The notes: generated by a model not told the origin, from the sequence alone. A DNA stretch of 64,000 nt from Tubulanus polymorphus (GCF_964204645.1 NW_027437457.1:1-64000), one strand, 5' to 3'. Positions 5,362-63,939 are shown, numbered from the stretch's first letter. Numbers and translations are program-made.

Positions 5362-8300
5362 TTAATTTGATTTCTTGTTGTTTTTCATCAGTTCAGTGCC
5401 GTTCGTTGTTGCCGTAGTAACGCCATTCTTTACTGTTCCGTTTGTTGCATTTTGATTTTTCTGCAAGTATAAATAAAGAGCTATTTTTATCTCTCTAAAC
5501 AGAGTTAAAGTTTGTTGCCCTGCAAATCTTGGGAGTTCTTTAAAGGAATCTATTGTGTTGTTGCCCCAAAGTTAAAGACTCTCCTAAACTATGTTTGAAA
5601 TGAAACTACAGGTGGAACCTCATTACAACGAACTCAGATACAACGAATCATTAGATTTAACAAAGAATTTGGTCCCGATTACGGTAACACAATTTGAGTA
5701 ATTTCATATTGCATTTAACAGATTTTCTGGTCTGGTGAAGTTCGCTGTAACGAGGTTCCACCGTAACGAGGTTCCACCGTAACGAGGTTCCACTGTAACT
5801 CTTAATGTTAGCTATTAGTCGAAAAAATAGTGCATGTATTAATGTGCAGAGATACAGTGGCGGTAAGGTAATTGTGCACTATTTTAACTCAGTTAAAATG
5901 TTTTATAGAATCAAAATGGCTAATCCTATATCTAGGGATAGGGTAATTATCAGGAATGTGGTCATTGCACTAGGGGTGGGCTTATCTCTCTAGGGGTGGA
6001 GTCATCTGTCAGTCCGCACTAGGGGCGGGCTTATCTCTCTAGGGGTGGAGTCATCTGTCAGTCCGCACTAGGGGCGGGCTTATCTCTCTAGGGGTGGAGT
6101 CATCTGTCAGTCCGCACTAGGGGCGGGCTTATCTCGCTAGGGGTGGAGTCATCTGTCAGTTGAGAAAACTCATAAAATACGTAAAACTAAATCCACAGAC
6201 ATGCAACTGATAGGGGCATTAATAGGGGGCGCTGCTGTGGTGCATACCTTCTGTTGTTTCGGATGTTTATAAGCTCGAATGTAAAAGTTGATGAATAAAC
6301 AGAAAATGGAGAATCCGTAAAGAATTAACGCCCACTGCATCCACAGTGGAAACTCACATCGGTTGATTAGTGAGATACAGGAGTGCGACATACCAGCTAT
6401 AAACTGGGTCTAGTTAGAAAAATATAAAAAACAAAAAAACACAATTAACAACAACACGAACGAGAGGATGAAGGGTACCTGAACGTGATAGGCTTGTTTA
6501 TAGAAGTTACAGAACAACGCGATTATTGTAACACCGTACAATAGAGCTATCCACTGCATCCACCGTGGATAATCACAATCTATATATAAACTATAACTCG
6601 CGTAAAACATCCCCATCATAAACTGCAGCTACAATTAAATATATCTGATTAACATCGGAAATATTGATTCAGAGACGTTTTAATAAACGAGAAATATCAG
6701 CTTACGAGTTGTAGAATAGTGAGATATTTCTTCCACCAGAGATATTTTTGATATTGCGGACCGAGCGCCGATACTCCATAGTATGTATACATTATCACGT
6801 GTATAAATGAGTTGATCATCGCTCCAAAAAACGCTGTAAAATATACATCAAAAACATGTTTACTCTTACAGGAGTGTAGTTCTAGTGGGGGCAGGGGGGA
6901 ACCATCACCTTTAACTGGAGCCAACCCTCAACCCGGAGACATTCCTTTTAATAGCGGAGTATTCCTCAGACTGGAGGCACTCACTCGCTTAACCCAGATG
7001 CATCCTTTAATCCGGAACCACCCTTTGCCTGAGAAATTCCACCTCAACCCGGAGCCATCCGCTGTCTGTGTGACATGGAATATTGAACACACTTACACTG
7101 TCCTCCAGGAACCCATTTCACTTACACTGTCCTCCAGGAACCCATTTCACTCCGATCCACCAAATAGGAAACATCGTTGCATGATGATAAACATGTAGAA
7201 ATGATACTTGGTTAAATTTCTTCCTCAATATAAAAAATATTGTATCCAAAAACTCGATGAGTTTTGAGAAGTAATACCACCATAACGCCTTAGCCATCTA
7301 CAATATATAAATCACTCATTTATACAGAGATAATTCAGAGAGGTAGGATTTAGAGAGGTAGGATTCAGAGAGGTAGGATTCAGAGAGGTAGGATTCAGAG
7401 AGGTAGGATTTATAGAGGTAGGATTTAGAGAGGTAGGATTTAGAGAGGTAGGATTCAGAGAGGTAGGATTCAGAGAGGTAGGATTCAGAGAGGTAGGATT
7501 TAGAGAGGTGGGATTCAGAGAGGTAGGATTCAGAGAGGTAGGATTCAGAGAGGTAGGATTTATAGAGGTAGGATTTAGAGAGGTAGGATTCAGAGAGGTA
7601 GGATTCAGAGAGGTAGGATTCAGAGAGGTAGGATTTAGAGAGGTGGGATTCAGAGATGTGGGATTTAGAGAGGTGGGATTCAGAGAGGTAGGATTCAGAG
7701 AGGTAGGAGTCAGAGAGGTAGGATTTAGAGAGGTAGGAGTCAAAGAGGTAGGATTTAGAGAGGTAGGAGTCAGAGAGGTAGGAGTCAGTTAGGATTATAT
7801 CGTAGATCTCGCACAGTGAGATTGTACTTACATTAACAGATAAAGGATTGTCAGAGTAATCCACTGGTTGACACGTATAACTGTAATTCAGTTTCCAGGA
7901 AGTCGTTAAAACCTAGAAATTCATCGAGAAAAATCAATACATTGCGATCACTACTCTAGTAGTTCACCGGTCATCCACAAGAGGGAGCCAAACATACCTG
8001 GTAGAATATATGTAGATTAAGGACGACCAACGCGAGATTGTAGATGAATAACGTGATCCGTAGTTCAAACGGTTTCCGGTGTTTCATGAAGTTCATTCCT
8101 AGTCGAACTGTTACCAGGTAACCAATTGTTAACAGTATTGTTGGTAAATAACTGTCCATTAGAAACCAATCAGCAACTCGATTATCTATAAAATAACAAG
8201 AGGACCAACAGGTCCACACGGTTGATGACAGAGTTTAAAATTGACTAGTAGTGAGAGGTGGATGCCAGGCCCCTCTCTTCCCCACCCCCTCCCTTCCTCA

Positions 8301-8439
8301 CCCCCCTCCCCGCTGAGGAGGTAGGGCAGGGGGCGGAGGACGCATCGCCTGCTAGTACTCTCTATTTACCTGCTCGAGTCAAAGCCCAATCGTAAAACTC
8401 AATCAACTCATGGAGTTTATCTCTGACGATTTCAATCAT
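5362..8439 (-). CDS. Very-long-chain fatty acid elongase (ELOVL4/7 type), multi-exon
   Basis: [31 protein letters not shown] box, [22 protein letters not shown]-terminal KKSN ER-retrieval motif. Confidence 0.93.
5609..5795. mobile_element. Tc1/mariner-type MITE in ELOVL last intron
   Basis: TA|CAGGTGGAACCTC...GAGGTTCCACTG|TA termini. Right end locally triplicated. Confidence 0.7.
5966..6160. repeat. About 49-nt minisatellite, 4 copies
   Basis: GCACTAGGGGCGGGCTTATCTCTCTAGGGGTGGAGTCATCTGTCAGTCC repeated. Confidence 0.9.
7333..7788. repeat. 15-nt minisatellite (TCAGAGAGGTAGGAT)n, about 30 copies, intronic
   Basis: Direct inspection. Confidence 0.95.
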
Positions 8440-8599
8440 TTTCTAATTTTGGGTGGACCTGCAATCAATAAAACATGTGATTGAATTGAACCAGATATTT
8501 CGTGGTTTTCTGATCGTGCACGAGTTTGAATTAAAACATCGTTAATGAAAACAAAAAAAGATACTGATTTAGAACTTGATATCTGTAAAGATTACGTCA

Positions 8600-8820
8600 T
8601 ATTTACCGCGATACTGGATGATTTAAGGCTCCTGGGGCGCAGTGTCCTGGAGGGTCAAGGATCAACTCACTAACTTCCGGGTTCAATAAAGATTCGATTG
8701 AATTGAATTGGTTTTCTATTGCTGTGTTCTATTTCGTGTTTTTTGTTGATTTTCGACGGATTTAAAACATGAAATACGTGAAACTTTGGACGCAGAAATT
8801 TGAGAGATTTCACTGAAGTG
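8600..8820. promoter_or_regulatory. Probable bidirectional promoter ELOVL/VPS18
   Basis: Head-to-head ATGs 584 nt apart, both with apparent 5' UTR introns. ETS-like ACTTCCGG at 8673. Confidence 0.5.
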
Positions 8821-9022: not shown

Positions 9023-12000
9023 ATGGCGTCAATGATAGATCAATATGAACAGCAGATGAAGAGAACTCGATCTAATGCTACAACACAAGGCGATATATCG
9101 GTGAGTATTGGGGTGCTGGGGCACTGGGCGGAGAGCCCGGGGATAGTATGAGTATTGCGACCCGGGGGCGGAGAGCCCGGGGGTACCTGGACACGGAGCA
9201 GCTGGGTGTTTTCTAGACCAGTGTCAGTATCGAGGCGTGGGGGCGGAGAGCCCGGGGGTAGCTGGACACGGAGCAGCTGGGTGTTTTCTAGACCAGTGTC
9301 AGTATCGGGGCGTGGGGGCGGAGAGCCCGGGGGTAGCTGGACACGGAGCAGCTGGGTGTTTCCTAGACCAGTGTGAGTATTGGGGCGCGGGGGCGGGTAT
9401 CCTACGACTAGGGTCAGGTTGTTCCGAAGTGTTCTACTGTGTCGGTCTCATAGCGGAGTGTTGTATATTTTCAGTCAGTGAACAGTAATCCATTCCTCAA
9501 TGATTCCTCCGATGACGAATTACCGATATTCAATAAAAATCGCATCAATTTCAGGTAACCGTAGAAACCATCGATTGTTAGTAATAGTATTCGGTAGTCG
9601 TGGTGATGATTGTTGGTGTTTATATATTTTAGACCGCCCGATCCGATCACTCATCTCGTGGCTAGTAATAATTTCCTCGTTATCGCTATGAGAACAAACG
9701 TATTGTTACGAATTGATTTGGATCACCCTGACAACCCGGATGGTAAGAGCCAGGAACTCGCACCAGCGATTATCTTATTGTCTCGATGTTTATTACGTAT
9801 TTTATTTATTTTAAACAGAAGTTGAAATTGTGAAAAATAATGAAGATAGTATTCATAAAATATTCCTCGATCCGACCGGACGTCATTTGATAATTAGTAT
9901 GACTTCTACCGACGCTTTCTACGTGAATCGAGCTTCGAAGAAACCGAAACATCTCTCGAAAATGAAGGTACCGTAAATAATGGCTTCATATTCAACTGTG
10001 GGTGATTTATTTACAGTAAATATTCATATATTTAAGGGGCATCTAATAGAATCAATCGGCTGGAATCGACAAAATACAAACGATAATTCAACTAGTGAAA
10101 TAATTATCGGAACAAATCAAGGTCAGTTCTAGATATTTCAGATCCTTTTTGATATTTGAGATACAGTGGTTGATATTTGAGATACCATGTTTGCTATATT
10201 TGAGATACAGTGGTTTTGATATTTGAGATACCATGTTTACTAAATTAAAGGGTTGATATTTGAGACTGAGATTCAATCTGGAGAGGATAGTCGATTCTTT
10301 CAAGGCAGTTTAGAACAATACTGGAGACAGGTACAGTATACATACCGGTACTCCCCTCCTCTCCCCTCCTCTCCTCTCCTCTCCCCTCCTCTTACTCTAT
10401 CATCTCTTTCTTTCCCCTCTCCCTCTCTGCTCTCCTATTCTTTCCCTCTCTCTCCTCCTCTCCCCTCCCTTCTCTCTCCCCTCTCCTCTCCCTTCTCTCC
10501 CTCTCTCCTCCCTCTCCCCTCTCTCTGCTCCCTTCTCTCTCTCCCCTCCCTTCTCTCGCCTCTCTCCTCTCTCTCCCCTCCCTTCTCTCTTCCCTCCTTT
10601 CTCTCTCCTCTCTCCTCCCTTCTCTCTCCCCTCTCCTCTCCCTCTCTCCTCCCTTCTCTCTCCCCTCTCCTCTCCCTCTCTCCTCCTTTCTCTCTCGCCT
10701 CTCTCCTCTCTCTCCCCTCCCTTCTCTCTCCCCTCTCCTCTCCCTCTCTCCTCCCTTCTCTCTCCCCTCTCCTCTCCCTCTCTCCTCCCTTCTCTCTCCC
10801 CTCTCCTCTCTCCTCTCTCCTCCCTTCTCTCTCCCCTCTCCTCTCCCTCTCTCCTCCCTTCTCTCTCCCCTCTCCTCTCCCTTCTCTCCCTCTCTCCTCC
10901 CTCTCCCCTCTCTCTGCTCCCTTCTCTCTCTCCCCTCCCTTCTCTCGCCTCTCTCCTCTCTCTCCCCTCCCTTCTCTCTCCCCTCTCCTCTCCCTCTCTC
11001 CTCCCTTCTCTCTCCCCTCTCCTCTCTCCTCTCTCCTCCCTTCTCTCTCCCCTCTCCTCTCCCTCTCTCCTCCCTTCTCTCTCCCCTCTCCTCTCCCTCT
11101 CTCCTCCCTTCTCTCTCCCCTCTCCTCTCTCCTCTCTCCTCCCTTCTCTCTCCCCTCTCCTCTCCCTCTCTCCTCCCTTCTCTCTCCCCTCTCCTCTCCC
11201 TCTCTCCTCCCTTCTCTCTCCCCTCTCCTCTCCCTCTCTCCTCCCTTCTCTCTCCCCTCTCCTCTCTCCTCTCTCCTCCCTTCTCTCTCCCCTCTCCTCT
11301 CCCTCTCTCCTCCCTTCTCTCTCCCCTCTCCTCTCCCTCTCTCCTCCCTTCTCTCTCCCCTCTCTCTGCTCTACTCTTTTTATAGCTGTTTGATACTGTT
11401 TCAGTTGTTTAATCTGTGTAAAGATAAACCCGATGACCCTGTCCCAGTAACTGGACTAGAATTCGATAGAATGGACTGGAAGGCGAGTAATGAATACAAA
11501 TATTTCATAATGGCTACAACTCCTGGGTACGTCAGTTTACACATCTATGTAAAACAAGTTAAGTGTAATCTACTGTAATCGTTACTATAGTTACATAGTT
11601 TATTTGCAGACGTATGTATCAGTTTATTGGCACGATTCCAAATTCTATTGAAGCGCCGATATTTCAGCGTATATTCGCACAGTATGAAGATTTACCGGGT
11701 AAAACTAATCACTTTATTCTATATATTGAAGCCCCAGAGACCGGTGTGTTATTATAGATATCTATATTATAGGTCGGTTTGTAGAATTACCGGGTGGTAA
11801 TTGCGCGAGTCAACTACAATTATTCCATCCAAAATTCAGAGCTGCCCCGAAATCATTTGCTTGGATTACCGGTCCCGGGATTTACTACGGTTCTATAGAT
11901 TTAACAGGTGGCGCCGGTGAGGAAACGGTTACCGCTGAAACTAAACTTATTCCGTATCCTTTTATTCAACGATACATAATGCACCATTAACATGTTTTTC

Positions 12001-15000
12001 AATCGTTATAAACCGGTTGTTTAACTTGACGCGTTGCTATAGTTACCAGCAGACGGAGGATCTACCGGTTGCGATTGTTTTGACAGAGTTTCACGTTTTG
12101 ACGTTGTTTCGTAAACGTTTAAAAGCCGTCTGCGTTTTAAACGATCAGCTCATATTCGACGACGTTTTTACGGACGTAAGTGAAACAATAAACAGCGCCC
12201 CCTAGTGGTTGTCCTAGTTACCGGGTTGATAATGAGTTCGGTATTGAATTGTAGAAATTGACAGGTTTAAGAGGAATGTGTAAAGATCCGTTACGAGGAA
12301 CTATCTGGGCGTTCACTGATAAAGCAGTTTTCAAATATAAACTAATGAAGGAAGCGAGGTATGAGATTCTTATCAAATTGATTCCACAGATTCAATCGAA
12401 TTGATTCCGCAGATTCAATCAAATTAAGTCCGTTCAATCAAGTTTCTTTTCATCAACTATTTTCATTTTGATTACTAGAAATGTTTGGCAGATATTTTTG
12501 GATAAAGGAGATTTTGAGAATGCTCGCAGATATGGAGGGGTAAGAGTTGATGCTGCGATTGATGATTCTTGAAATGATTTTTATCCCCAGTTTACTTTGA
12601 TGTTGTGTTTGGTTTATTTTATTTGAGGATAATCCTGCGAATATGGATAAAGTACTAACAAAACAAGCCGAACATCTGTTTAAAGAAGGAAAGTAAGTAA
12701 AACATTATATCAAACATTGTATCAAACATTGTATCAAACATTGTATCAAACATTGTATCAAACATTGTATCAAACATTATATCAAACATTATATCAAACA
12801 TTGTATCAAACATTGTATCAAACATTGTATCAAACATTGTATCAAACATTGTATCAAACATTATATCAAACATTATATCAAACATTGTATCATCAAATTA
12901 GATGAAATTGTATGAAAATGTGTCAAAAATGGATGAAAAATTATCAAACTGTATTGAAATCTTTCAAATTGTATTGAAATGTCTCAAATTGTATTGAAAT
13001 GTTTCAAATTGTATTGAAATGTTTCAAATTGTATGAAAATGTATCCTATTTAACTCATATTGAACTGATAATTTGTAGATATGAGGAGAGTGCTCTACGG
13101 TTCGCGCGATCATTGAGTTCTTTCGAAGAAATCGCTCTGAAATTTGTCCAAGTCGAAGATAAAGAGGCTTTGAAAATATTTCTAAAAGAGAAATTGTCAG
13201 CATTCGGTATCAATGTACGCGGTTGAATCGGTCGGTGGAGTAATATTTAAACCGATGTCGTGGATTAATTATCTCTGTTGTTTAATTACAGGATAAAATG
13301 CAGATAACGATGATAGTTTTATGGTTAATCGAGATTTATTTGAATCAACTCGGTTCGCTCAGAGAACAAGGATTCAATATGAATTCTAAATACGACCAAA
13401 TACAAGAAAGTTTCTATAAATTCCTCGCTCAAAGTAAAGTTCTGGTAGGTATGGAAGCCTGTTAGTGCTATTCCAGTTCTTCGTACGGAGGCCTGTAAGG
13501 TATGGTGATATATATTTTCAGGAGAGTATTTTACTGAATAAGACGACTGTTTATGATTTAATCGCCAGTCACGGTGATATCGATGCCTTGGTTTACTTCG
13601 CATTCCTCATAAAAGGTACATCAAAACATCAAATTATTGGCAATAACAGCCACTAGAGGGCAGGGTGGGCAGGCAGACTGCCCGGTCGTCTGGCAGGCAG
13701 GCTGCCCTGTCGTCTAGCAGGCTGGTTAGCAGGTGGTCTGGCAGGCTGACTGCCAGGTGGTCTAGCAGGCTGACTGCCCAGTGGTCTAGCAGGCTGACTG
13801 CCAGGTGGTCTAGCAGTCTGGTAAGTGAGCAGGCTACGAGGTGGTCTGGCAGGCTGACTGCCACCAGGTGGTCTAGCAGGCTGGTAAGTGAGCAGGCTGC
13901 CAGGTGGTCTAGCAGGCTGGTTAGCAGGTTCAGATTGTTATGATATTTTACAGATTATGAACGAGTTTTAGAACATCACATACAACATGATCATTTTGAA
14001 GAAGCTTTAAAAGTTCTTCTCGAACACGGCAAGGTAAACACTAAATACCGTAAACACCGTACTCATTGATCGTTGTATATTGGTATATAATATTTATTCT
14101 ATTGTTGTAGGATCGGACTGATTTATATTATAAATATTCACCGTTACTGATGCAGAATATTCCTCGTGATACTGTATCGTCATGGATACACATGGCACGC
14201 CGATTAGATCCTAAACGTCTGATACCGGCTCTCGTTCAATACGATCATAATACATCAATAGTCGACGAACAACAGGTAACGCCATCTATATACACCGCTG
14301 CGAACTATCTACCGTATACGCCACCTATTGTCTATTGTATATTTGTATTTTCCAGGGGAATGAAGTAATTCGTTATTTAGAGTTTTGCGTTCGAACGTTA
14401 GACAACAAAGATCAATCTATTCACAACTATTTACTGTCGTTATACGTGAAACTGAATAAACTCGATGAATTAATGACTTATTTGACCGTCGAAGGGGAGG
14501 TAGGTATTAGCGCGACTACCCTCCACCCCCTCATGTTAGACTAGGCAGTTGAGCAGTTCCTATTGTGAAACCTAGGGGGCGGTAGATGTAGATTTGAAAT
14601 GGTTTTTTTGTTTTTTCGCACGCAGGATCAAGATATTGTTCATTATGATTTGAAGTACGCATTAAGACTTTGTTCTCAGCACGGATTGAAACGGCCGTGT
14701 GTTCATATCTATTCAACGATGAATCTATTCGATGAAGCCGTTGATTTAGCTCTTCAGGTATCAATAACATCGTCCCGTTTATCGTTGCCGCCGGAAACTG
14801 AGTTTATATTGTTGCATAATGTTTCAGGTCGACGTCGATTTGGCGAAAAAGAACGCGGACAAACCGAGCGATAACGAAGAACTGCGTAAAAAACTCTGGC
14901 TCAGAATCGGTAAATTACATCGCTATATACTCACCACTGATTGTAATTGATAATAAATTACATCACTATGGAGTCAAAACTGATTGTAGTTGATGATAAA

Positions 15001-16733
15001 TTACATCACTATAGATTCGCCACTGATTGTAAATATAAATTACATCACTATGGACTCACCACCGATTGTAGTTGATGATAAATTACATCACTATGGACTC
15101 ACCACTAATTGTAATTGATAAGAGTTTACTGAACTATAAAATTGTAGCTCGTCACGTCGTTGAAGAAGATAAAGATATAAAGAAAGCGATGCAGTTTGTT
15201 CAGGAGTGTAATTTATTAAAGATCGAAGACGTTCTCCCGTTTTTCCCTGATTTCGTCACCATCGATCATTTCAAGGTCGGTTCTTTTTTTACGCGAACAG
15301 GAATTAGAAATATTTTGATGTTTTTTCGATATTTGTTTGAATGATGTTTTTCAGGATGCTATTTGTGAATCGTTAGAGGAATACAACGAACACATTGAAA
15401 CGTTGAAAACAGAAATGAATGAAGCGACTGAAAGTGCGAAGGAAATCAGAGACGAAATTCAAACATTTAGAAATAAGTGAGAAAAACAAAATTATCAATC
15501 AATTTTCAGGAGTTGGATCTGAGATCTCAGAAAACCGTGGAACCGTGGAACTGAGACCAAGAGATTTCCCTGGCCATATTCTACTTCCTAGTGCTTTATA
15601 AAGTAATCAAAGGTCTTGAGGCGTTCCATCAAAAAATATTCATAAATTCTTAGGACAATGGGGTATTGCAGGATTTTGGCAGAGCACAATTTCCCCCGAG
15701 ACAGCGTGTGTGTGTGGATCGATCAGGATAAATCAGTATATCTGCCCTTTGAATTTCACATTTGTTCTATATTTTCTATAATTCAAGTTAATTGGTGATT
15801 TTAATTGCAGGTTTGCGTTCGTGAAAGGACAGGATAAATGCACAGCTTGTAATTATCCACTTCTAACTCGCAAATTTTACCTGTTTCCGTGTATGCATCG
15901 GTTCCATATGGATTGTTTAATAGCTGAGGTAAATACCTCTTTCATTCATACCTCTCTTACCCTTAACCTCACCCTGTCTGAGAGGTATGACCTCTCTCTC
16001 TCAACCTTTACCTCACCTCACCCTGTCTGAGAGGTATAACCTCACTCTCTCTGAGAGGTATAACCTCACTCTCTCAACCTTTACCTCATCTCACTCTCTC
16101 TGGGAGGTATAACCTCACTCTCTCAACCTTTACCTAACCTCACTCTCTCTGGGAGGTATAACCTCATTCTATCTGGGAGGTATAACCTCTATCTCTCTGA
16201 GAGGTATAACCTCACTCTCTCTCTGAGAGGTATAACCTCTCTCTCTCTGGGAGGTATAACCTCACTCTCTCTGGGAGGTATAACCTCATTCTATCTGGGA
16301 GGTATAACCTCTATCTCTCTGTGAGGTATAACCTCACTCTCTCTCTGAGAGGTATAACCTCACTCTCTCTCTGAGAGGTATAACCTCTCTCTCTCTGGGA
16401 GGTATAACCTCATCCTTTCTGTTGTAGGTGATGCCACATTTACCAGCTCGAGAGCGTAGTGCCGTCGATGAACTACAGAGGGCGTTGTCGACTAGTGATC
16501 AATCTCAAGGTCTATTAAAGACTGAATTAGATGAGATTGTAGCTAGTGAATGTATTTATTGTGGTGATTATATGATCAGGTCAGTTTAAACGCGTTTATT
16601 TGTTGTCTGGAACTGGTTCCTGATTCTCCCTGAAGTTCCGGGATTAAATGACTATTGTTCTATTTTTAGATGTATTGATAAACCATTCATTGATGCAGAA
16701 GAGGAAGAGATGATCAAACAAAGTTGGAGTTAA
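9023..16733 (+). CDS. VPS18: Vacuolar protein sorting 18 (HOPS/CORVET), multi-exon
   Basis: MASMIDQYE start, IFLDPTGRHLII, GHLIESIGWN, SFEEIALKF, YDLKYALRLC, LKIEDVLPFFPDFVTIDHFK, RING-H2 (C..C...FPCMHRFHMDC...CIYCGDYMI). Confidence 0.96.
9127..9395. repeat. About 74-nt GC-rich minisatellite in VPS18 intron
   Basis: 3 to 4 copies of GGCGGAGAGCCCGGGGGTAGCTGGACACGG... Confidence 0.85.
10350..11372. repeat. 1-kb polypyrimidine (C/T) tract in VPS18 intron
   Basis: Almost purely C/T on the + strand. Confidence 0.95.
12700..12892. repeat. 12-nt minisatellite (AAACATTGTATC)n
   Basis: About 16 copies right after a donor site. Confidence 0.95.
13665..13930. repeat. Intronic minisatellite (GCCAGGTGGTCTAGCAGGCTGACT-like)
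   Basis: About 10 degenerate copies. Confidence 0.85.
14911..15122. repeat. About 45-nt intronic minisatellite starting at donor
   Basis: TAAATTACATCACTATGGACTCACCACTGATTGTA repeated about 5 times. Confidence 0.85.
15962..16412. repeat. Intronic minisatellite (CTGAGAGGTATAACCTCACTCTCT)n
   Basis: About 16 copies, each with a GAGGT-ATA-ACCTC mini-hairpin. Confidence 0.9.
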
Positions 16734-17044: not shown

Positions 17045-17230
17045 GACTGATCACCAGTCAGTCACCACACTAATCAGACAAACTGACGAACCTCCTCAAT
17101 CGCAACTGGTCTATGGTCTAGTGGTTAGCGTGCTCGGCTGACATGCTGGAGGTCGCAGGATCGAGTCCAGCTAGGGTTAGGGTTACGATCGATCTAGGGT
17201 TAGGGTTACAGCCACTTAGGGTTAGGGTTG
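17045..17230 (+). mobile_element. tRNA-derived element with TAGGGTTAGGGTT tail (copy 2)
   Basis: ACTGGTCTATGGTCTAGTGGTTAGCGTGCTCG...GGATCGAGTCC followed by three TAGGGTTAGGGTT blocks. Leader similar to 4394-4450. Confidence 0.6.
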
Positions 17231-23036: not shown

Positions 23037-26000
23037 ATGTCGTCTAAAATGGATATAACTCAGTATAACAGTAAGCGCAGTGTGGTAACTGGAGGAGTTA
23101 GCGCAGACACTGTCGTCACTGGTGGTAAGGCCACTTAAAGTTTCATTCGATTCTTCTTCAAGACAACATGTTGACGTTGTTGTTGATGTTCAATAATTTT
23201 ATGGGGGGCCTGGCCGCAGTCTTATTGTCAGAGCGGCGAGGGTTGTTACCCCACCGTATCCAGCCCATTCCTAAAACCGAACCACCCTCTGCCACTCTGT
23301 CATGCGACCCTCATTAATTCCCCAGCGCAGGGGCCTAAAAACACTTTTTCAGCAATAATTAGTATCCCATCATCACGTTCAGTTAACTAATGGTCACACC
23401 TGCTCTCTGTGTACAGCTAGCTAAAAAAATATTATTGATTCCATTAAAAAATACAGATGCATTTTTGATTATATATTTAGGATATTATAATTATTCAGTT
23501 CTGGTAAAAATTGACAAAAGTTACTGGAAGGCGCTTGATTTTAGTCGGGGCAGCATTCTATCTGGTTTGCAAAACTACAAATGATGATAGGGTCTGGGGG
23601 CAGTGGGGCTGTGTGGAGACCATGAAGTGGACCATTTTGCTTATAATATTAGCAGCAAAATGCTGCCCTCACCTACTTCATGTGTTTGTAATGAATTAGG
23701 TTCTCCATGCCTTATGGAGTCCGAATATTAGATGATCTTATATTCTTTTTTTGGAAACAACAACTGGAATTAGGGCAGCAGGTTAGCTGATGAAGTGTAT
23801 ATGTGAGGAGAGTGAGTCAGTCATAGAGACCTCCGCCCTTATACACTGACACACTGTCACACTATAGGCTGTTTCAAATTAATCAATATGTTTATATCAT
23901 ATCAGACACACCAGGTGCTGCAGTCCCAACCAACTCCCCAGGACCTCACTAAACCTCACTTAAACCAGTTCCCTCATAGTCCTCACCTCCCCAACCTCCA
24001 GAACCTCACTAAACCTTACTTAAACCAGTTCCCTCATAGTCCTCACCTCCCCAACCTCCAGGACCTTACTAAACCTCATTCACACATCAGTACTGGCCTC
24101 ACCTTTCCAACCTCCAGAACCTCATTAAACCTCACTTAAACCAGTTCCCTTATAGTCCTCACCTCCCAGACCTCCAGAACCTCATTCACACATCAGTACT
24201 GGCCTCACCTCCCCGACCTCCAGAACCTCAGTAAACCTCATTCACACATCAGTACAGGTCTCTAATTCAGTTCTCTGCTCACCAGTAAATAGTTGGTGTA
24301 TAATTTCAGGAGGTCGCCGGTGTGCTCCGATACCTACAGCTCCTGATGAGGATCTATTATTAAGTGGTGTAGCTGTTTTAACTGGTAAGTTATAAACGGC
24401 TCAAACTCAACTGAGTTCCTAAAGTCCGGGAGGTTAAATTCATCTGATTCGGGCTGTATCATACATTCTAATAGTCACAGTCATCTCATACTGAATTCTT
24501 CTCTATTTTTGAGGGACTTCTTAATTCAATCTTAATTTTTGTGCAAGTCATCATTTGGATAAGTTGTCAAAATTCATAGTCCTAACTGATAGAGCTTCCA
24601 TTGATTTATATTTCTGGGTAGATCGTTAGGGCTTCCATTGATTTATATTTCTGGGTAGATCGTTAGGGCTTCCATTGATTTATATTTCTGGGTAGATCGT
24701 TAGGGCTTCCATTGATTTATATTTCTGGGTAGATCGTTAGGGCTTCCATTGATTTATATTTCTGGGTAGATCGTTAGGGCTTCCATTGATTCATATTTCT
24801 GGGTAGATCGTTAGGGCTTCCATTGATTTATATTTCTGGGTAGATCGTTAGGGCTTCCATTGATTTATATTTCTAGGTGGTTATGACTCGTTAGGGCTTC
24901 CATTGATTTATATTTCTAGGCGGTTGTGACTCGTTAGGGCTTCCATTGATTACATTTCCGACTAAGAATCACATAAAACTGACGTCAATTGATTCGAGCG
25001 ATTTGTGTGAATTAATCAAATATTTCATCAGTTTAACGAAACCTTCTCAAAGATTAAACGGATTTGTATTCCTCGCTGATTTAAGAATTACTCCGACCAT
25101 GAACTTTACAGTGATCATCGATGCGTTACAAAAACTACAGGTAAATTAGTTACTTATACCCTGTTTATCTCAGTACCTGCTGCTGCTGCTGCTGCTAGTG
25201 GTGCTGTTGCTGGTGCTGCTGCTGCTGCTGCTGCTGCTGCTAATATTTCACTGAAGTGTTTGAGAATTGTATTTGTCTGTTGTTTAAGTTGCTGCTGCCA
25301 TCTATAGTGTGTAATTGGTATTAATTACAGATAGAGAATCGAGGCAGCGTGGCTGTATTTTATATAATTCAACCTCGAGCTAAAGAATCGTTAAAATCAC
25401 TACGGAAACAACTCGGAATCAAACAGAAAAAATTTCATTTAAAACGATTTTTCCGTAAATCGACGAGTAACGAATTCAAATACGATCAAAACTGTTTATT
25501 TAAGGTAAGAGGAGACGAAGAATGAAACTGATATTTTGATATTTGATGTGAATTATAGGTTGATATTTTGATATTTTCTAGAGTATAATATCGACGACGC
25601 AGTCAGAGTTATATCGATATTTCGATCGTCCTCAGTTAACTATAGAATTCGGAGGTTCACTAACGTATTCACACGAGGCATGGGTTCATTTTAGACAGGT
25701 ATATAATCCTCCTCTACTCTCTATCCTACCTACCTCCCCTCTATTGCTATAATGAACTGTTCTATTCCAGGAAGTGGAAGGGTTGATTGTGGATATCGAT
25801 AAAGTATTTGAAAAGTTTCCTCAAGCGGCCGATAAAATAGAACTATTAAAAGAGTACGACGTACCGGATACCGAGGACGATGTCAACAATCTAATCGCTT
25901 GGATACGTAACCGTTACCACGACATCATGAGGTATTTATCGTAACCGTGGTTACTACGCCGTACCGGTCCGTATTGTTGTCGATAATTCAAATATTGATT

Positions 26001-44327: not shown

Positions 44328-44536
44328 AACCGGACTGGTTAGGGTTACGAACCGGACTGACCACGCTGACCGTCTGGTGCTGGCATCTAGCAGCAGTTTT
44401 CGGAACTAGGGTTAGGGTTACGTACCGGACTGGCTAGGGTTAGGGTTACGAACCGGACTGGCCACGCTGACCGTCTGGTGCTGGCATCTAGCAGCAGTTC
44501 TCGGAACTAGGGTTAGGGTTACGAACCGGACTGGCC
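44328..44536. repeat. Repeat block with CTAGGGTTAGGGTTACGAACCGGACTGG units
   Basis: Same units recur at 45163-45378. Confidence 0.85.
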
Positions 44537-45162: not shown

Positions 45163-45378
45163 GACTGGCCACGCTGACCGTCTGGTGCTGGCATCTAGCA
45201 GCAGTACTCCGAACTAGGGTTAGGGTTACGAACCGGACTGGCTAGGGTTAGGGTTACGAACCGGACTGGCCACGCTGACCGTCTGGTGCTGGCATCTAAG
45301 CAGCAGTTCTCGGAACTAGGGTTAGGGTTACGAACCGGACTGGCTAGGGTTAGGGTTACGAAACCGTCTGGTGCTGCC
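45163..45378. repeat. Second CTAGGGTTAGGGTTAC block, abutting the YIPF3 start
   Basis: Two ~100-nt units near-identical to 44346-44536. Confidence 0.85.
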
Positions 45379-45393: not shown

Positions 45394-49366
<3,973 letters not shown>

Positions 49367-50149: not shown

Positions 50150-52207
<2,058 letters not shown>

Positions 52208-52581: not shown

Positions 52582-54984
52582 AACCCCTGTACATCCTCTA
52601 TTCAGCATCAGGACCGCTCTGAATCGGAATCAATAATTACTGAGTTCGAACCCGGCCCATACGCTTAGTTTAATAATGACGCTATGATCGCCATCTATTG
52701 GATTTTGGATGAACTCACTAGATAGCTCTTACTGGTCTCACTGAGTCTTCTTCAGTGGGTTGAAATCACACTCGCCATCTGGTGGATTTCTATGCTACTA
52801 CAGTTTAATGATGGTTTTATCCACCAGATGGCGAGTGTGATTTTAACGGATTAATGAAGAGTCAGTGAGACAAGTAAGAGCTATCTAGTCGGTTCAGCCA
52901 AATTCCAATAGATGGCGATAACGTTAGAAATCTTGATATCCTCTCGTCGGGCACCCTGTACATCCTCTATTCAGAGCATCAGGACCACTCTGAATCAGTC
53001 AGTAATTACTGGGTTCGAACCCGGGACACCCCTGTACATCCTCTATTCAGTATGAGGACCACTCTGAATCAGTATCAGTAATTTGATTGCTGGGTTCGAC
53101 CCCGGGACACACCTGTACATCCTCTATACAGCATCAGGACCACTTTGAATCAATATCAGCAATTACTGGGTTCGAACCCGGGAAACCCCTGTACATCCTC
53201 TATTCAGCATCAGGACCACTCTGAATCAGCATAGTCAGTTATTAACTGGGTTCGAACCCGGGACACCCCTGTACATCCTCTATTCAGTATCAAGACCACT
53301 CTGAACCAGTATCAGTAATTGCTGGGTTCCAAACTTTTGGTACATAGAATAATGATACTATGATCGCCATCTATTGGATTTTGGATGAACTCACTTGATA
53401 GCTCTTACTAGTCTCACTGACTCTTTTTTAGTGGGTTGAAATCACACTCGCCATCTGGTGGATTTCTATGCTACTACAGTCTAATGATGGTTATATCCAC
53501 CAGATGGCGAGTGTGATTTTAACGGATTAATGAAGAGTCAGTGAGACAAGTAAGAGCTATCTAGTCAGTTCAGCCAAATTCCAATAGATGGCGATCACGT
53601 TAGAAATCTTGATATCCTCTCGTCGGGCACCCTGTACATCCTCTATTCAGCATCAGGACCGCTCTGAATCAGTCAGTAATTACTGGGTTCGAACTCGGGA
53701 CACCCCTGTACATCCTCTATTCAGTATGAGGACCACTCTGAATCAGTATCAGTAATTTGATTGCTGGGTTCGACCCCGGGACACACCTGTATATCCTCTA
53801 TTCAGCATCAGGACCACTCTGATCCAGTATCAGTAATTACTGGGATCGAACCCTGGACGGCCCCTGTACATCCTCTATACAGCATCAGGACCACTCTGAA
53901 TCAATATCAGCAATTACTGGGATCGAACCCGGGACACCCCTGTACATCCTCTATTCAGCATCAGGACCACTCTGAATCAGCATAGTCAGTTATTAACTGG
54001 GTTCGAACCCGGGACACCCCTGTACATCCTCTATTCAGTATCAAGACCACTCTGAACCAGTATCAGTAATTGCTGGGTTCCAAAACTTTTGGTACATAGA
54101 ATAATGATGCTATGATCGCCATCTATTGGATTTTGGATGAACTCACTAGATAGCTCTTACTGGTCTCACTGACTCTCCTTTAGTGGGTTGAAATCACACT
54201 CGCCATCTGGTGGATTTCTATGCTACTACAGTCTAATGATGGTTTTATCCACCAGATGGCGAGTAGGATTTTAACCGATTAAAGAAGAGTCAGTGAGACC
54301 AGTAAGAGCTATCTAGTCGGTTCAGCCAAATTCCAATAGATGGCGATAACGTTAGAAAATCTTGATATCCTCTCCTCGTAGGACACCCCTGTACATCCTC
54401 TATTCAGCAGCAGGAATCACTCTGAATCAGTATCAGTAATAACTGGGTTCGAACCCGGGACACCCCTGTACACCCTCTATTCAGCATCAGGACCACTCTG
54501 AATCAGTATCAGTAATAACTGGGTTCGAACCCGACACACCCCTGTTCACCCTCTATTCAGCATCAGGACCACGCTGAATCAGTATCAGTAATAACTGGGG
54601 TCGAACCCGGGACACCCCTGTACACCCTCTATTCAGCATCAGGACCACTCTGAATCAGTATCAGTAATAACTGGGTTCGAACCCGACACACCCCTGTTCA
54701 CCCTCTATTCAGCATCAGGACCACGCTGAATCAGTATCAGTAATAACTGGGGTCGAACCCGGGACACCCCTGTTCACCCTCTATTCAGCATCAGGACCAC
54801 GCTGAATCAGTATCAGTAATAACTGGGGTCGAACCCGGGACACCCCTGTACACCCTCTATTCAGCATCAGGACCACGCTGAATCAGTATCAGTAATAACT
54901 GGGTTCTAACCCGGGACACCCCTGTGCACCCTCTATTCAGCATCAGGACCACTCTGAATCAGTATCAGTAATAACTGGGTTCAA
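52582..54984. repeat. Composite satellite: ~60-nt units with GGGTTCGAACCC plus three 233-nt palindromes
   Basis: Unit CACCCCTGTACATCCTCTATTCAGCATCAGGACCACTCTGAATCAGTATCAGTAATTACTGGGTTCGAACCCGGGA. Palindromes at 52687-52919, 53361-53597 and 54115-54347. Confidence 0.9.
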
Positions 54985-55020
54985 GTTATCTGAAGATATT
55001 TTATTTTATTGCTGAAATAT

Positions 55021-58000
55021 TTACAAGTTAAAATCATATTTTTGAAATAGTTTTCTGAATTCTGCAGCCATTTCTTTCTCTTCATCGATGGAATATTTAC
55101 AGTTTCTCCAATCAATTCTATCAGTCATATCCAGTATCTCAGCTCCCGCTAATACCTCTCTATATTCAATATAAATATTATCAATTAGTTTATTATTATG
55201 ATTAATATTAATCGAATCTGATTGGTCGACTACAAACCTTCCAAACTGTAGCGGAAACGATTTCTTTATTCGATGCAGTAATTTGTCACCAGAGGGCAGT
55301 TCTACGTAGAAGTAGGGGGCACCTTCGGGTACGATCTGTAAATCAGATGAATCTATTATTGAGCTGTAGAGGGGTGATAGGTGATAAATGATAAAAGGGG
55401 TGGTAGGTAATGGTTACCTGTTTGATGTCAGACATTTTCGGTATTTCGTGAAGTTCAAACGATGTTTGTTGAGATTGAGCGCAATCTAGAAAACTTTCCT
55501 TTAACTCATCACCAGCCGTCGATACAGGAATCGGTACAACCTACAGAATATACTAACTATATACACATCAACCCTACATCACCTCCTCCCACCCCTTCAC
55601 TATCTAATAGACTCACCGGCCGTCGATACAGGAATCGGTACAACCTACAGAATATACTAACTATATACACATCAACCCTACATCACCTCCTCCCACCCCT
55701 TCACTATCTAATAGACTCACCGGCCGTCGATACAGGAATCGGTACAACCTACAGAATATACTAACTATATACACATCAACCCTACATCACCTCCTCCCAC
55801 CCCTTCACTATCTAATAGACTCACCGGCCGTCGATACAGGAATCGGTACAACCTACAGAATATACTAACTATATACACATCAACCCTACATCACCTCCTC
55901 CCACCCCTTCACTATCTAATAGACTCACCGGCCGTCGATACAGGAATCGGTACAACCTACAGAATACACTAACTATATACACATCAACCCTACATCACCT
56001 CCTCCCACCCCTTCACTATCTAATAGACTCACCGGCCGTCGATACAGGAATCGGTACAACCTACAGAATATACTAACTATATACACATCAACCCTACATC
56101 ACCTCCTCCCACCCCTTCACTATCTAATAGACTCACCGGCCGTCGATACAGGAATCGGTACAACCTACAGAATACACTAACTATATACACATCAACCCTA
56201 CATCACCTCCTCCCACCCCTTCACTATCTAATAGACTCACCGGCCGTCGATACAGGAATCGGTACAACCTACAGAATATACTAACTATATACACATCAAC
56301 CCTACATCACCTCCTCCCACCCCTTCACTATCTAATAGACTCACCGGCCGTCGATACAGGAATCGGTACAACCTACAGAATACACTTACTATATACACAT
56401 CAACCCTACATCACCTCCTCCCACCCCTTCACTATCTAATAGACTCACCGGCCGTCGATACAGGAATCGGTACAACCTACAGAATATACTAACTATATAC
56501 ACATCAACCCTACATCACCTCCTCCCACCCCTTCACTATCTAATAGACTCACCGGCCGTCGATACAGGAATCGGTACAACCTACAGAATATACTAACTAT
56601 ATACACATCAACCCTACATCACCTCCTCCCACCCCTTCACTATCTAATAGACTCACCGGCCGTCGATACAGGAATCGGTACAACCTACAGAATACACTAA
56701 CTATATACAACCCTACATCACCTCCTCCCACCCCTTCACTATCTAATAGACTCACCTGTATTTGTAAATGTTGAGTTCTATAATTTCTCTCAAATGAAAC
56801 AATTTCTTTTTTTTCTTGTTTAAACATTTTTCTCAATGCTTTTTTATATCTGAATCAAACGGTTAAGGCATAACCCATAGCAACGATATCGTAACCCATA
56901 GCAACGATATCGTAACCCATAGCTACCCCTCAATAATCGATATTTATAATGGTAGTCAAGGATACGAGTTGATTTCATTAACGACATCGTCAGGAGCGCT
57001 GACTGTTGACTGATAATGACCAATAGGTAAAATCAGTACGTGATCGGGGACTAGTCCACCTTTAGCTAGTGCTAGATATACCTAAAAAACGGAAAACAGC
57101 AAGTCCAATATGGAGAGAACCAGTCCAATACAAAGATAGAACCAGTCCAATTATACTTACATTCTCACCAACACTGACAACTAAATGTTTTTCAACTTGA
57201 GGACTTCCTAAACAAAACCAACACGGTCCAGTGGGCTGAGCTGTAAATATAAACAACCAGCCCATTAGCTTAATACCAGGGGCCAGTTGCACAGTCGTGA
57301 CTTAAGTCCAAAAGTGGTCTTAAATCTGAAGACTGGTCTTAAGTTGTTAGATTGTCTATAGAACTAAGTTGGTCTTAGACTGGTCTTAAGTCTAAGCCAT
57401 GACTATGGAACCAGCCCCAGGAGCTAGTTTTATAATCTGGTATCATCTTTTTATCTTGGAACTATAAATTCAACCTCACACTCTATGTACCACTAAAATC
57501 ACTGATGGGCCGACTGTAATACAGTGACCTTGTCACTCACCTTGATGTTTTTTAACCGAACGACCTTGACCTCCTTGGTGTTGTTTTTTACGTTTTGTGT
57601 CTGGATTCTGTGATTTAGTATCGAAGAATACTGGATTAATCTCGGTAGTAGGTTGAGCTGTTGTAGGTTGAGTTGTAGGTTGAGGAGTATAAGGTCTCTC
57701 CGTGACGTCGTCAGGTTGTTTCGTTAATTCAGTTTGATCCATGCGACTCATTGGTTTTATACTAAACGCATATAAAAACTTGCGTTTCTCACGGTTACCG
57801 ACTGGAGCGAGCGCGATGTATCGAGTCACGTGATTGGTCGATTCCGATAGAATCTGATGATTCCTGAATTATTGAAACACATACAATAGATTCCTCGCTT
57901 GACTCTGATAATCCCGTGCCCTGCAAATCATGCCCCGGGAATTGATCATCTCGGACTGCGCCCGGAATTGATCATCTCGGACTGCGCCCGGAATTGATCA

Positions 58001-59951: not shown

Positions 59952-61018
59952 TTTTCCGTTTTGAGTGCGCGACGACCTTGAGAATAGTTTAACTATTTTA
60001 CCAACATAAACCGATATAAGTTTAATTGAATTGACAAAATGTTTAAAATATTTTTTTAAATTTAAAGGTTAAATAGATTCATGAATATCGATTTGATATT
60101 GTAGCGAGGCTTAATTTTATAATTTCAAAAACATTCGAACTCATTTTTGTTTTATAATTGGGCGACGACCTTGAAAAATAATTTAACTATTTATCAACAT
60201 GTACCGTTATAATTTTATATATTTATACCGATTTCCTAACTAAATCACATATGTCGTCATCTTTCAAGAAATCGAATGTATCTTTCTAAATATGTAGTTT
60301 AATAAATAGATATATTTTTCGCTTGCTTACTTCTGCGTTCTAATACTTTTTGGTAATCCGGTCATGGCGGTAATTCGGATTTCCATAGTGTTAATCCGCT
60401 GCACCAAAATAGTTATTTTGAAAACCGTTAAATCTACTTAAATAATTCAGGAAACTAATTATTTTCATCATATTACTCCATTTTAGGACCCTTTTTAGAT
60501 ATTAATTCGTTTTATAGATGACATCTGATTGAGTTAGGTAATTGTTTACACTATCAGTGAACCCACGTGGTTTTCCTGGAACTGAACGAAAATAAACATT
60601 TTACCAAGTACCAAATAGGGTCGAATTTAAACTCTGTTCAACAGAAATAGAGTCATTTAATTGTAATAAAAAACTCATGTTGATTCAATAAATTTAAATC
60701 ATTAAGATAAGGTCTTTGTTTAAATGATGAGCAGCTGAATTTGTCGAGTAAATAAGGGTATATTTATTCGCCGTACATTCGGGCACCGGGTTCCATTCAA
60801 TGGACGCCATATTATTGTAAAAAAATACAATAAAAAAGCGTTTGAAAAGATTCAAAAAAATCGGCGCAGATTTGAAGCGGCGAAAGTTAGGAAAAACCGG
60901 TTCAATGTGACATGTTGAGAAGTGATATTTGAGATAAACGCTGTGTTTTGTCAGCGACTGATAATTGCGCGGTTTGTGATCGGGAGTAAGAGTCGAGAGA
61001 GGAGGTGATGTTGAAATA

Positions 61019-63939
61019 ATGGTTGATAGGAATTCTACAATAATTGATGAGGGAAATATCTTATCATCATCAACTGTAGCAGCGATAATGAATCAATCAC
61101 CGCCTCCATCAACGTCCGCCGCCACTGGTAAGTGAGGTTCGATATGGATTGTGGACTCTTCTCGGAGTCTCAGAGACTCCCGGCGGAGTCACCGGGAGAC
61201 AGTTTGATGATGATGTTGGTGTTTTTATTGTATTGTAGGTTTAGTAGTAACAGATAAACCTCAGACGCAAGTGTTCATTCCGTGCCGTGTTTGTGGTGAT
61301 AAAGCTTCTGGATATCATTATGGTGTAACGTCATGTGAGGGCTGTAAGGTATGTACCCCTCCTAGCACCCTCGCCCTGTACCCCCTCGCCCTGCACGCCT
61401 CCCTCTGCACCCCCTCCCCTGCACCCCCTTCCCTGTACCCCGGCCCGCCCTGTACCCCCTCCCCTGTACCCCTCGCCTGTACCCCCTCGCCTGTACCCCG
61501 GCCCGCCCTGTACCCCCTCGCCCTGCACGTCCCTCCCCTGCACCCCCTCCCCTGCACGTCCCTCCCTTGTACCCCCTCCCCTGTACCCCCTCCCCTGTAC
61601 GCCCCCCTCCTGCACGCCCCCCTCCTGCACGTCCCTCCCCTGTACCCCCTCCCCTGTACGCCCCCCTCCTGCACGCCCCCCTCCTGCACGTCCCTCCCCT
61701 GTACCCCCTCCCCTGCACCGCGACTATCTATATCCATTTTTCATGTTTTAACTATCATCTATTTGATATATTTCACAGGGATTTTTCCGTCGAAGCATCC
61801 AAAAACAGATTGAATATCGCTGTTTGAGAGATGGAAAATGTTTAGTAATTCGTCTAAATCGCAATAGGTGTCAGTACTGTCGGTTTAAAAAGTGTTTAGC
61901 AGTTGGAATGTCTCGAGATTGTAAGTTATTTGTTTTACTAGCCGTATGGGCGTGTCATTACATTGATTGACAGTTTTACCGCTGTACATTATGGGCGTGT
62001 CTATTTACATTGATTGACAGTCTATTTTGTTTACACATTATGGGCGTGTCTATTTACATTGATTGACAGTCTATTTTGTTTACACATTATGGGCGTGTCT
62101 ATTTACATTGATTGACAGTCTATTTTGTTTACAGCTGTGCGTTATGGGCGTGTACCTAAGCGTATAAAATGTCTGGAGGAACAGATGGTGGCGACACCTA
62201 CTGAGCAGCAGACAATTGAAGAGAAACATCAATTAGCTATTTATGATATAATACTAGGAGTTTCACAAGCGCATCACGCAAACTGTCATCTTACTGAGGA
62301 TAAATTAAAATCACTACAGAAAACACCTAAAGATCTGGTAAGATTTAATATCAATCTGCTCCCAGTAACCCCTCAGACAGACTGCTGTCTGTAGTCTGTA
62401 CCCTGCACCCCCTCAGACAGACTGCTGTCTGCACCCTGTACCCCTCACACCTGACATGTTTATGCTATTTATCTTTCAGTGTACGGTAAAATTAAAAGTA
62501 GAAGATTTTGAAGATTCGAGTTTGATGTCGATGATTTTAACGACTCAAAGAATAACAATGTGGGAAACAATCGCTACATTAATGACTCCGACAATACAAC
62601 AACTTGTAGAATTTGCTAAACGAGTTCCAGGTATCAATATCTCATTCCTCTCACTCTACTGCCTGAAATATATCAATCTCACTCACTATGTGATATATCA
62701 ATCTCACTCACTGTGTGATATATCAATCTCACTCACTCACTCACTCACTCACTATGTGATATATCAATCTCACTTATCGTACCCTGTGTGATATATCGAT
62801 TCTAATGTGTGATATATTTTGATTTTGATATATTTAGGATTCACTAATTTACCTCAAGATGATCAGTTGATATTGATAAAGACAGGATATTTTGAGATTT
62901 GGCTCGTTAGAATTGCGCGAATGGTGAATGTTAACAATACAACAGTTGTATTCAGTGACGGATCAATTGTCAACAGAAATCAATTGGATATTGTTTATTC
63001 CGTACGTATTTTACTGTTTACCGAGTCTCATAATTCTGCGGTTGCTCAAAAGTTGGTACAAGTTTAACCCGTAGATTGTTGATATTGTGATAATGAAATT
63101 GCGCTATATGACTTAATTCTATCTATTTATCCGATATTTCTATTTGAGCAACTGATCCCAGGATTTACTACTGTAGTCGATACTCACATGCCGCAGTGGG
63201 AATACTCACATGCCGCAGTGGGAATACTCACATGCCGCAGTGGGAATACTCACATGCCGCAGTGGGAATACTCACATGCCGCAGTGGGAATACTCACATG
63301 CCGCAGTAACACTATGATATTTGTCTATTTTCAGCCGGAACTCGTTCAGAGTTTGTTTGATTTTTCCCTTGCGTTTAATTATCTCAGACTCAGTGACACA
63401 GAAATCGGTTTATTTACAAGTATTGTTCTACTTACACCAGGTATTTAACTCCCTCTCCTCCTACCTCCCTCTCCTCCTTCCTACCTCCCTCTCCATCCCT
63501 TCCTACCTCCCTCTCCATCCCTTCCTACCTACCTCCCTTCCTAGCTCCCCCATTCATCCCTTCCTACCTCCCTCTCCCTTCCCTTCCTACCTCCCTCTGA
63601 TTTCCTTTCACTGATGCTGAGAGTGTTGTATATTTTGTAGATAGAATTGGTATCACTGATTGTAAAGGTGTCGAAGAAGTCCAAGATAAATTAATTGAAG
63701 CGTTAAAACTACAACTTTCTCGCAATCATTCGACTGAACCTCAATTATTCGCTAATTTACTGATGAAATTACCAGAACTGAGATCAATAGGAGCTCAACA
63801 TCATCAACTTATACATTACTATAGAGAAAACTGGTCTCATATGAAATTACCTCCTCTCTTCTCGGAGATATTCGATATTCCGAAAAATGACGATGATGGC
63901 GATGATGATACCAGTAATAATGAGGAGGAAAAGTCATAG
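61019..63939 (+). CDS. E78: Nuclear receptor E78 (NR1E1 / Eip78C-like)
   Basis: [64 protein letters not shown]...VRYGRVPKR matches E78. [22 protein letters not shown]; AF-2 LPPLFSEIF. Confidence 0.9.
61352..61718. repeat. C-rich minisatellite in E78 intron
   Basis: CCCTGTACCCCCTC-like units. Confidence 0.9.
61944..62153 (+). repeat. About 50-nt repeat spanning an E78 acceptor
   Basis: TTATGGGCGTGT (exonic) joined to TACATTGATTGACAGTCTATTTTGTTTACA (intronic), 4-5 copies. Confidence 0.88.
63180..63307. repeat. 21-nt x6 minisatellite
   Basis: ATACTCACATGCCGCAGTGGGA repeated. Confidence 0.92.

Follow-up and report, generated by a model that had tools for sequence, protein, structure and literature searches.

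Minisatellites with copies of host splice junctions in short introns of a Tubulanus polymorphus scaffold: splice-site choice and expectation from chance placement

In a stretch of 64,000 nucleotides (nt) from the genome of Tubulanus polymorphus, a palaeonemertean ribbon worm (Nemertea), tandem repeats located in the introns of several genes, among them RPS11, CWF19L1, and a YIPF3-like gene, contain copies of the exon-intron boundary of their own host gene. This raises the questions of whether an amplification process that seeks out splice junctions has to be assumed for such arrays and of how a single splice site is chosen among many copies. The stretch, referred to as the window in the following, comprises positions 1-64000 of an unplaced scaffold of 98,126 bp in the 268-Mb assembly. 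The arrays are probably minisatellites of the "mirage" type, which arose by ordinary local tandem duplication in very short introns. Chance placement accounts for the junction-spanning arrays in the window and no junction-seeking mechanism is needed, and those arrays persist in which the copy next to the exon body has retained a functional splice site.

Junction-holding arrays and their reality

Nine arrays of the window hold a splice junction of their host gene. Seven of them had been proposed in an earlier reading of the sequence alone (hereafter the sequence-only reading) and all of these were recovered by Tandem Repeats Finder and by reading of the array flanks, which additionally revealed one array in the VPS18 gene and a second one in the SEC14/CRAL-TRIO gene (SEC14 gene hereafter). 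All nine are organized head-to-tail with 2-26 copies and up to 97-100% matches. Junction copies were counted by coordinates in addition to the flank reading. The copy numbers given previously were reproduced for six arrays, except for E78, where approximately four instead of the claimed five or so copies are present.

46566-47924, plus strand: acceptor array of the YIPF3-like gene, 52-bp unit (19 intron and 33 exon letters), 26 copies
51210-52111, plus strand: acceptor array in the last intron of RPS11, 54-bp stop-free unit (27 + 27 letters), 17 copies
24590-24958, plus strand: acceptor array of the SEC14 gene, 37-bp unit (23 intron and 14 exon letters), 9 copies
61945-62153, plus strand: E78 array, 49-bp unit derived from the acceptor and about 20 first exon letters, about 4 copies
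31777-32325, minus strand: donor array of an unnamed gene, 72-bp unit with 9 exon letters and the donor, 6 copies
7090-7151, minus strand: donor duplication of ELOVL, 29-bp unit (22 exon and 7 intron letters), 2 copies
55509-56756, minus strand: CWF19L1 array, 104-bp unit (the whole 76-nt intron and the first 28 exon letters), 12 copies
10149-10264, plus strand: VPS18 array (additional case), period of 23/46 bp including the first 13 letters of the next exon
25977-26020, plus strand: second array of the SEC14 gene (additional case), two-copy duplication of 23 bp with the acceptor and 15 exon letters

The window contains about a dozen compact genes. ELOVL, RPS11, CWF19L1, E78, and the YIPF3-like gene were identified via Pfam or annotation, and VPS18, the SEC14 gene, Pur-alpha, a G protein-coupled receptor (GPCR), and others were named by our own reading only. 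Pfam searches, which were made exon by exon and not on joined spliced models, matched S17 for RPS11, CwfJ_C_1 and CwfJ_C_2 for CWF19L1, zf-C4 for E78, and ELO for ELOVL; no significant match was obtained for single exons of the YIPF3-like and SEC14 genes. An Atlas search gave a weak, unconfirmed CRAL_TRIO lead for the SEC14 gene only and none for YIPF3. The identity of the YIPF3-like gene is derived from a representative search and cluster names, with protein XP_074661933.1 being 100% identical to the window exons.

As proposed by the sequence-only reading, it is the copy adjoining the exon body that continues the conserved protein. In case of the YIPF3-like gene, the true intron extends from 46486 to 47884 and the exon body starts at 47885; the exon upstream of the array encodes residues 123-153 and the exon after the array residues 154-197 of XP_074661933.1. 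In case of RPS11 (true intron 50999-52080), positions 1-43 of the S17 profile lie in the upstream exon and positions 44-68 in the exon past the last copy, with the junction at 43/44. The intron spanning the CWF19L1 array runs from 56755 down to 55541 and separates the CwfJ_C_1 exon upstream from the CwfJ_C_2 exon downstream. For the remaining genes, true introns were assigned to 24385-24937 (SEC14 gene, array 24590-24958), to 61921-62134 (E78, with the zf-C4 match in the upstream exon), and from 7125 down to 6834 (ELOVL, with the ELO match in the exon).

The earlier observation that splice signals are intact in some arrays and lost in others was confirmed. The acceptor AG is present in 25 of the 26 YIPF3-like copies and in all nine copies of the SEC14 gene array at 24590-24958; in RPS11 it is in register in 12 of 17 copies and one base off in the other five. 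Acceptor and donor are intact in 12 out of 12 CWF19L1 copies, which thus enclose 11 pseudo-exons of 28 nt. The two donors of ELOVL (7125, true, and 7096) and those of the unnamed gene (true donor 32314 and five intact copies at 32225, 32153, 31989, 31917, and 31845; GT in 6/6) all retain GT in the same context. According to alignment, however, AG is lost in every decoy of E78 and in most decoys of VPS18, and it is also lost in the upstream copy of the SEC14 gene duplication at 25977-26020.

Exon/intron microhomology at the unit ends, which had likewise been noticed before, is in agreement with the array lengths: the YIPF3-like array comprises 26 x 52 + 7 letters and the ELOVL duplication 2 x 29 + 4 letters, and five letters are shared in CWF19L1. 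The RPS11 array exhibits a four-unit super-period of acceptor variants at 51216-52081, in the order AG, AG off by one base, AG with an altered exon letter, and again AG off by one base, which points to expansion in multi-unit steps. A second array of RPS11 is purely intronic.

51022-51200, plus strand: second RPS11 array, 21-bp unit

Two single-base differences were noted at these loci. The base just past the repeated exon part of RPS11 (52108) is T in the assembly, and C in the RNA run and in the reads of another individual, a synonymous change. The base that marks the last CWF19L1 copy (55514) is the same as in the other copies in the datasets X1 and X6 described below.

The existence of the arrays was assessed in read-derived contigs of two samples (X1 and X2) and in raw Illumina reads of a third individual (X6), with contig word depths and multi-mapping reads serving as rough copy-number measures. 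Relative to single-copy depth, RPS11 array words reach 13.9x in X1 and 8.9x in X2, where the assembly predicts 9.8x; CWF19L1 array words reach 6.0x and 4.0x, where 10.1x is predicted. Raw reads of X6 cover both arrays, and their low summed depth within the arrays suggests fewer copies. Although the estimates are rough, these data point to real and possibly copy-number-variable arrays. An artefactual over-expansion of the arrays during assembly of the long reads, so that single copies would be found in the reads, as the sequence-only reading had considered, is hardly credible. The scaffold is indeed unplaced, measures only 98 kb, and consists of tandem repeats to 27%, and the CWF19L1 word depth in X1 and X2 is lower than 12 copies on both haplotypes would give. 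However, an artefact is contradicted by the multi-copy word depth in X1 as well as X2 and by the raw X6 reads located on both arrays, RPS11 words are deeper than the assembly predicts in X1, and the CWF19L1 shortfall is compatible with copy-number polymorphism.

Searched across the 268-Mb genome, the YIPF3 and CWF19L1 units match their own locus only. A mobile element or a dispersed satellite as their source was therefore rejected. The RPS11 locus is single-copy in the genome and its only copy is situated on the scaffold of the window, so that the scaffold is not an uncollapsed, spare haplotig.

Choice of the splice site

Dataset X5 was recognized as a transcriptome run by the absence of depth on intergenic repeats, by spliced contigs, and by a poly(A) tail after 52249. 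An RPS11 contig of this run (depth 277, with poly(A) tail) joins 50998 to 52081 and thereby defines a GT..AG intron of 1,082 nt; the acceptor of the RPS11 mRNA is the last of 17. RPS11 array words occur in X5 at a depth of 10, i.e., 3.7% of the mRNA, which, with about nine assembled word copies, corresponds to 0.4% per copy. Traces of unspliced RNA would give this level.

The sequence-only reading had invoked strict exon definition, re-splicing, or heavy nonsense-mediated decay (NMD) for the tolerance of many identical decoys. For RPS11, neither NMD nor re-splicing is necessary. The array resides in the last intron, and at least the decoy closest to the exon (52027), whose AG is in register, would lead to in-frame, stop-free blocks of 18 codons. 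Because products of such in-frame last-intron decoys would escape NMD, the clean RPS11 mRNA reflects site choice rather than clean-up, and NMD as its cause was rejected.

For the YIPF3-like gene, four isoforms are annotated at NCBI. Residues 1-279 are common to them across the 153/154 junction, which corresponds to the last of 26 copies, and array sequence is contained in none of the four annotated isoforms. The proposal that the spliceosome ignores many identical decoys is thus borne out by RNA for RPS11 and by public annotation for YIPF3, and the exon-adjacent site is presumably used in the other genes as well. As a further option, recursive splicing was considered and excluded, since no decoy acceptor is directly followed by a donor consensus: the letters past the decoy AGs start with GG or CT and not with a GT donor. 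A weak GT in the YIPF3-like array is located one base too far and would add one base per recursive cycle.

In case of CWF19L1, RNA contigs span 55052-55497 at a depth of 4.7 and verify two introns further downstream, which measure 78 and 82 nt. X5 provides no RNA over the array or the upstream exon; the contig ends at 55497, 43 nt into the exon, and a search for protein fragments that span the junction found no candidate. Judged from the sequence, inclusion of all 11 pseudo-exons would add 308 nt and result in a frameshift with an early stop in the exon body; three modules would add 28 in-frame codons.

The exon-adjacent site, i.e., the first donor or the last acceptor, would be the one picked by the spliceosome. 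It likely wins because it lies close to the unique exon body, with its enhancers, and to the downstream end of that exon, which would be the next donor or the poly(A) site. The decoys may be nearly neutral passengers, identical in young, homogenized arrays and with AG lost in older, diverged ones, as neutral decay would leave them in E78, VPS18, and the SEC14 gene.

An alternative explanation holds that the arrays are kept for a function, either as decoys that tune expression through intron retention or NMD, as regulators acting by copy number, or as nascent exons or introns in case of CWF19L1. Several observations fit this: the large arrays keep their splice signals perfectly, haplotypes and individuals seem to have different numbers of copies, the RPS11 unit lacks stops, and three CWF19L1 modules equal 28 in-frame codons. 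Moreover, decoy exons are reported to regulate intron retention (PMC7373989), and mirages were put forward as a route of intron gain (PMC3087553). On the other hand, 97-98% identity within arrays together with kept signals is what recent expansion and homogenization produce without selection, AG is lost in the older arrays (E78, VPS18, and the SEC14 gene), decoy use in RPS11 is not measurable, and no annotated YIPF3 isoform includes array sequence. We therefore regard a function of the arrays as unlikely.

Junction overlap and chance placement

The sequence-only reading had attributed the arrays to a microhomology-driven process that repeatedly hits junctions, in which case junctions should be overlapped more often than expected by chance. 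Introns around 38 arrays were delimited by reading frames, conserved protein continuity, and GT/AG sites, and their length before expansion was estimated by collapsing every array to one unit. The collapsed introns have a median length of 85 nt and range from about 50 to 130 nt, and array-free introns confirmed by RNA measure 78-82 nt; units comprise 12-104 nt. If a unit of length u is placed uniformly in contact with an intron of length l, the probability that it includes a junction is about 2u/(l+u). A second null model was restricted to viable placements, in which 6 or more intron letters at a donor, or 15 or more at an acceptor, leave a functional site.

Among the 38 arrays, 9 span a junction, compared to 16.1 expected under uniform and 12.2 under viable placement (P of 9 or more = 0.998 and 0.94, respectively). 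When only the 31 arrays with the most reliable splice sites are counted, 8 are observed versus 13.5 and 10.1 expected, and even doubling of every intron length yields no significant excess (P = 0.11). Junction overlap above chance is therefore not found in this window, an outcome that the sequence-only reading had itself named as a refutation of its proposal. Spanning arrays tend, if at all, towards a slight deficit of the kind expected from weak purifying selection. Units of at least 48 nt span a junction in 5 out of 6 cases, with 4.3-4.5 expected, and it is due to their unit length that the three highest-scoring arrays are all spanning ones. Greater expansion of spanning arrays was rejected as well, since the median copy numbers of spanning and internal arrays are 6.0 and 5.8, respectively (Mann-Whitney P = 0.99).

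Six further arrays start on the donor G or at most 4 nt from it. They hold no exon letters and copy the intronic half of the donor.

28661-28978, plus strand: donor-edge array
9101-9396: donor-edge array
14911-15138: donor-edge array
27224-27285: donor-edge array
48451-48625: donor-edge array
1642-1744: donor-edge array

Considering all intron-internal arrays, 11 out of 27 begin within 9 nt of the donor G, with 5.6 expected (post hoc P = 0.009), and a distance of 6-89 nt is kept from the acceptor AG. Protection of the branch point and the pyrimidine tract would produce both the crowding at the donor and the distance from the acceptor. Examples of such internal arrays are found at 12364, 12700, 14911, 26461, 27224, 28661, 48451, 57102, and 63449, several of which repeat the intronic donor half.

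An amplification driven by microhomology and specifically attracted to splice junctions, possibly by the junction sequence, by transcription-coupled events, or by splicing intermediates, would lead to an over-representation of junction-holding arrays. The nine arrays with exon letters and the six donor-edge arrays within 64 kb, the short stretches of 7, 5, and 4 nt shared by the ends of three units, the spanning position of the three best-scoring arrays, and the donor-side crowding of internal arrays are in line with such an attraction. Nevertheless, it appears very improbable to us: spanning arrays remain below expectation under both null models, copy numbers are alike in spanning and internal arrays, intergenic and untranslated region (UTR) arrays are equally abundant, and the donor crowding vanishes if the last 25 nt or so of the introns, which include branch point and pyrimidine tract, are taken as protected. 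From the earlier proposal, the local duplications with short direct repeats thus stand, but a preference for junctions does not.

According to the favoured explanation of ordinary tandem duplication, seeding probably occurred when direct repeats of 4-12 nt underwent replication slippage or unequal exchange. Later expansion and homogenization would have proceeded as in any minisatellite via unequal exchange, which is suggested by the four-unit super-period of the RPS11 array. Many units include an exon-intron boundary because introns are short, minisatellites are abundant, and units reach 12-104 nt, so that a striking window-wide pattern has an ordinary cause. Tandem Repeats Finder reported 64 distinct arrays with a period of at least 10 per 64 kb, which cover 26.6% of the window bases. 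This content, equal to 1.0 array per kb, compares to 4.0% and 0.21 array per kb in random genome samples, i.e., 20 samples of 10 kb drawn from the ten largest contigs.

Several points weigh against this explanation. The placement test was applied to a single 64-kb window, whose unplaced scaffold is about fivefold richer in arrays than the 20 random samples, and it is no firm guide to the genome as a whole. With all three top-scoring arrays spanning junctions and few cases overall, a modest real bias may exist. With RPS11, YIPF3, and part of CWF19L1 as exceptions, the gene models derive from frames and GT/AG sites as we interpreted them, and one self-chosen acceptor (last YIPF3 intron) was contradicted by the annotated protein and corrected before the final test. 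The RNA evidence consists of contigs from one run, and contigs lose rare isoforms.

Relation to known systems and further repeats of the window

In amphioxus, arrays termed mirages have been described in Adh3, troponin C, the globins BflGb6 and BflGb9, and PGBD5; they occur at either boundary, mostly keep AG/GT, leave splicing undisturbed, and have different copy numbers on different haplotypes, and it has been suggested that new introns may originate from them (PMC3087553, PMC3902484). The arrays of the window share the main features: a head-to-tail array within a gene, a tandem unit that spans the host-gene exon-intron boundary with AG/GT often kept, and a regular mRNA, as given by RNA for RPS11 and by annotation for YIPF3. 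They differ in that the host is a nemertean, that a unit holding a complete intron occurs (CWF19L1), and that copy numbers reach 26. They are also far denser, with nine cases in about a dozen genes, and an excess over chance was tested and found absent. The class of phenomenon is already known; what is new is its occurrence in this phylum and at this density, with as many as 26 copies and with a unit that holds a whole intron. Previously described at a few amphioxus loci only, mirages now turn out to be dense in a nemertean. Probably, they arise generally as a side effect wherever minisatellites turn over rapidly in compact genes.

A donor-side counterpart is found in intron 7 of human F7, where the first unit of a 37-bp variable number tandem repeat (VNTR) spans the exon 7 donor. 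The identical pseudo-donors that follow normally remain silent, and scanning in 5' to 3' direction selects the donor located furthest upstream (PMC1557585). The arrays of ELOVL and the unnamed gene resemble this arrangement with a first unit over the exon-donor boundary and identical donors thereafter. F7, however, is a single locus studied with minigenes. Moreover, a rule of upstream-first scanning does not account for the choice of the most downstream among identical acceptors observed here.

CWF19L1 is similar to intron gain according to the Rogers model (PMC3265369, PMC4974935, PMC2891723) in that splice signals are duplicated together with exon sequence, which creates 11 extra complete, canonical introns of 76 nt. 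Unlike in the known cases, where the new intron is used and the frame is preserved, inclusion of the CWF19L1 pseudo-exons (11 x 28 nt) would cause a frameshift. With recursive sites and decoy exons, the arrays have in common that extra intronic splice signals could engage the spliceosome, but a recursive site requires a donor consensus immediately after the acceptor, which no decoy in the window has, and the data gave no sign of regulated intron retention.

It is tempting to speculate that T. polymorphus carries mirage arrays genome-wide at a density unknown elsewhere, with the exon-adjacent site winning by a strict positional rule; at present we consider this doubtful. If true, the genome-wide density would be convergent with amphioxus and would provide a natural collection of splice sites that are identical and compete with each other, in which 24 AG-intact decoy acceptors of YIPF3 are ignored, as are 16 decoys of RPS11 without NMD. 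Twelve perfect 76-nt introns of CWF19L1 and the 28-nt exons between them would then leave as one intron of 1.2 kb, i.e., intron-definition splicing would be overridden in a genome of short introns. Alternatively, the birth of an intron or exon may have been caught in progress. The CWF19L1 array with its 11 intron-plus-microexon modules could separate intron from exon definition and bears on intron gain. RPS11 represents a clean natural datum of 16 decoy acceptors, some of which would yield in-frame products invisible to NMD, with array words amounting to less than 4% of the mRNA word depth.

Other repeats of the window are located outside the junction-holding introns. Between the convergent genes RPS11 and CWF19L1, three arrays with a 76-77-bp unit and a tRNA-like T-arm motif occupy 52584-54983. 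Their words occur at a depth of 10,000-40,000 in the DNA runs and are absent from the RNA run; due to this depth, the unit belongs to a very abundant dispersed (SINE-like) family. A recurrent 28-nt motif with two telomere-type hexamers is present at 17162-17229, 44337-44535, and 45163-45371, inside duplicated units of about 101 bp and adjoining tRNA-like sequence. It resembles a component of some dispersed element more than a telomere.

Minisatellites also occur in-frame within coding sequence:

57644-57685: exon of CWF19L1, 12-nt repeat of the PQPTT type
32972-33070: exon of the unnamed gene, 21-nt repeat rich in Gly/Pro/Arg
38568-38945: exon in the Pur-alpha region, 30-nt acidic repeat

Finally, ELOVL contains two neighbouring, similar exons at 6173-6628 on the minus strand, which represent alternative forms of one C-terminal membrane segment. 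By its sequence, the pair seems to stem from tandem duplication of an exon, and mutually exclusive splicing of the two copies is conceivable.

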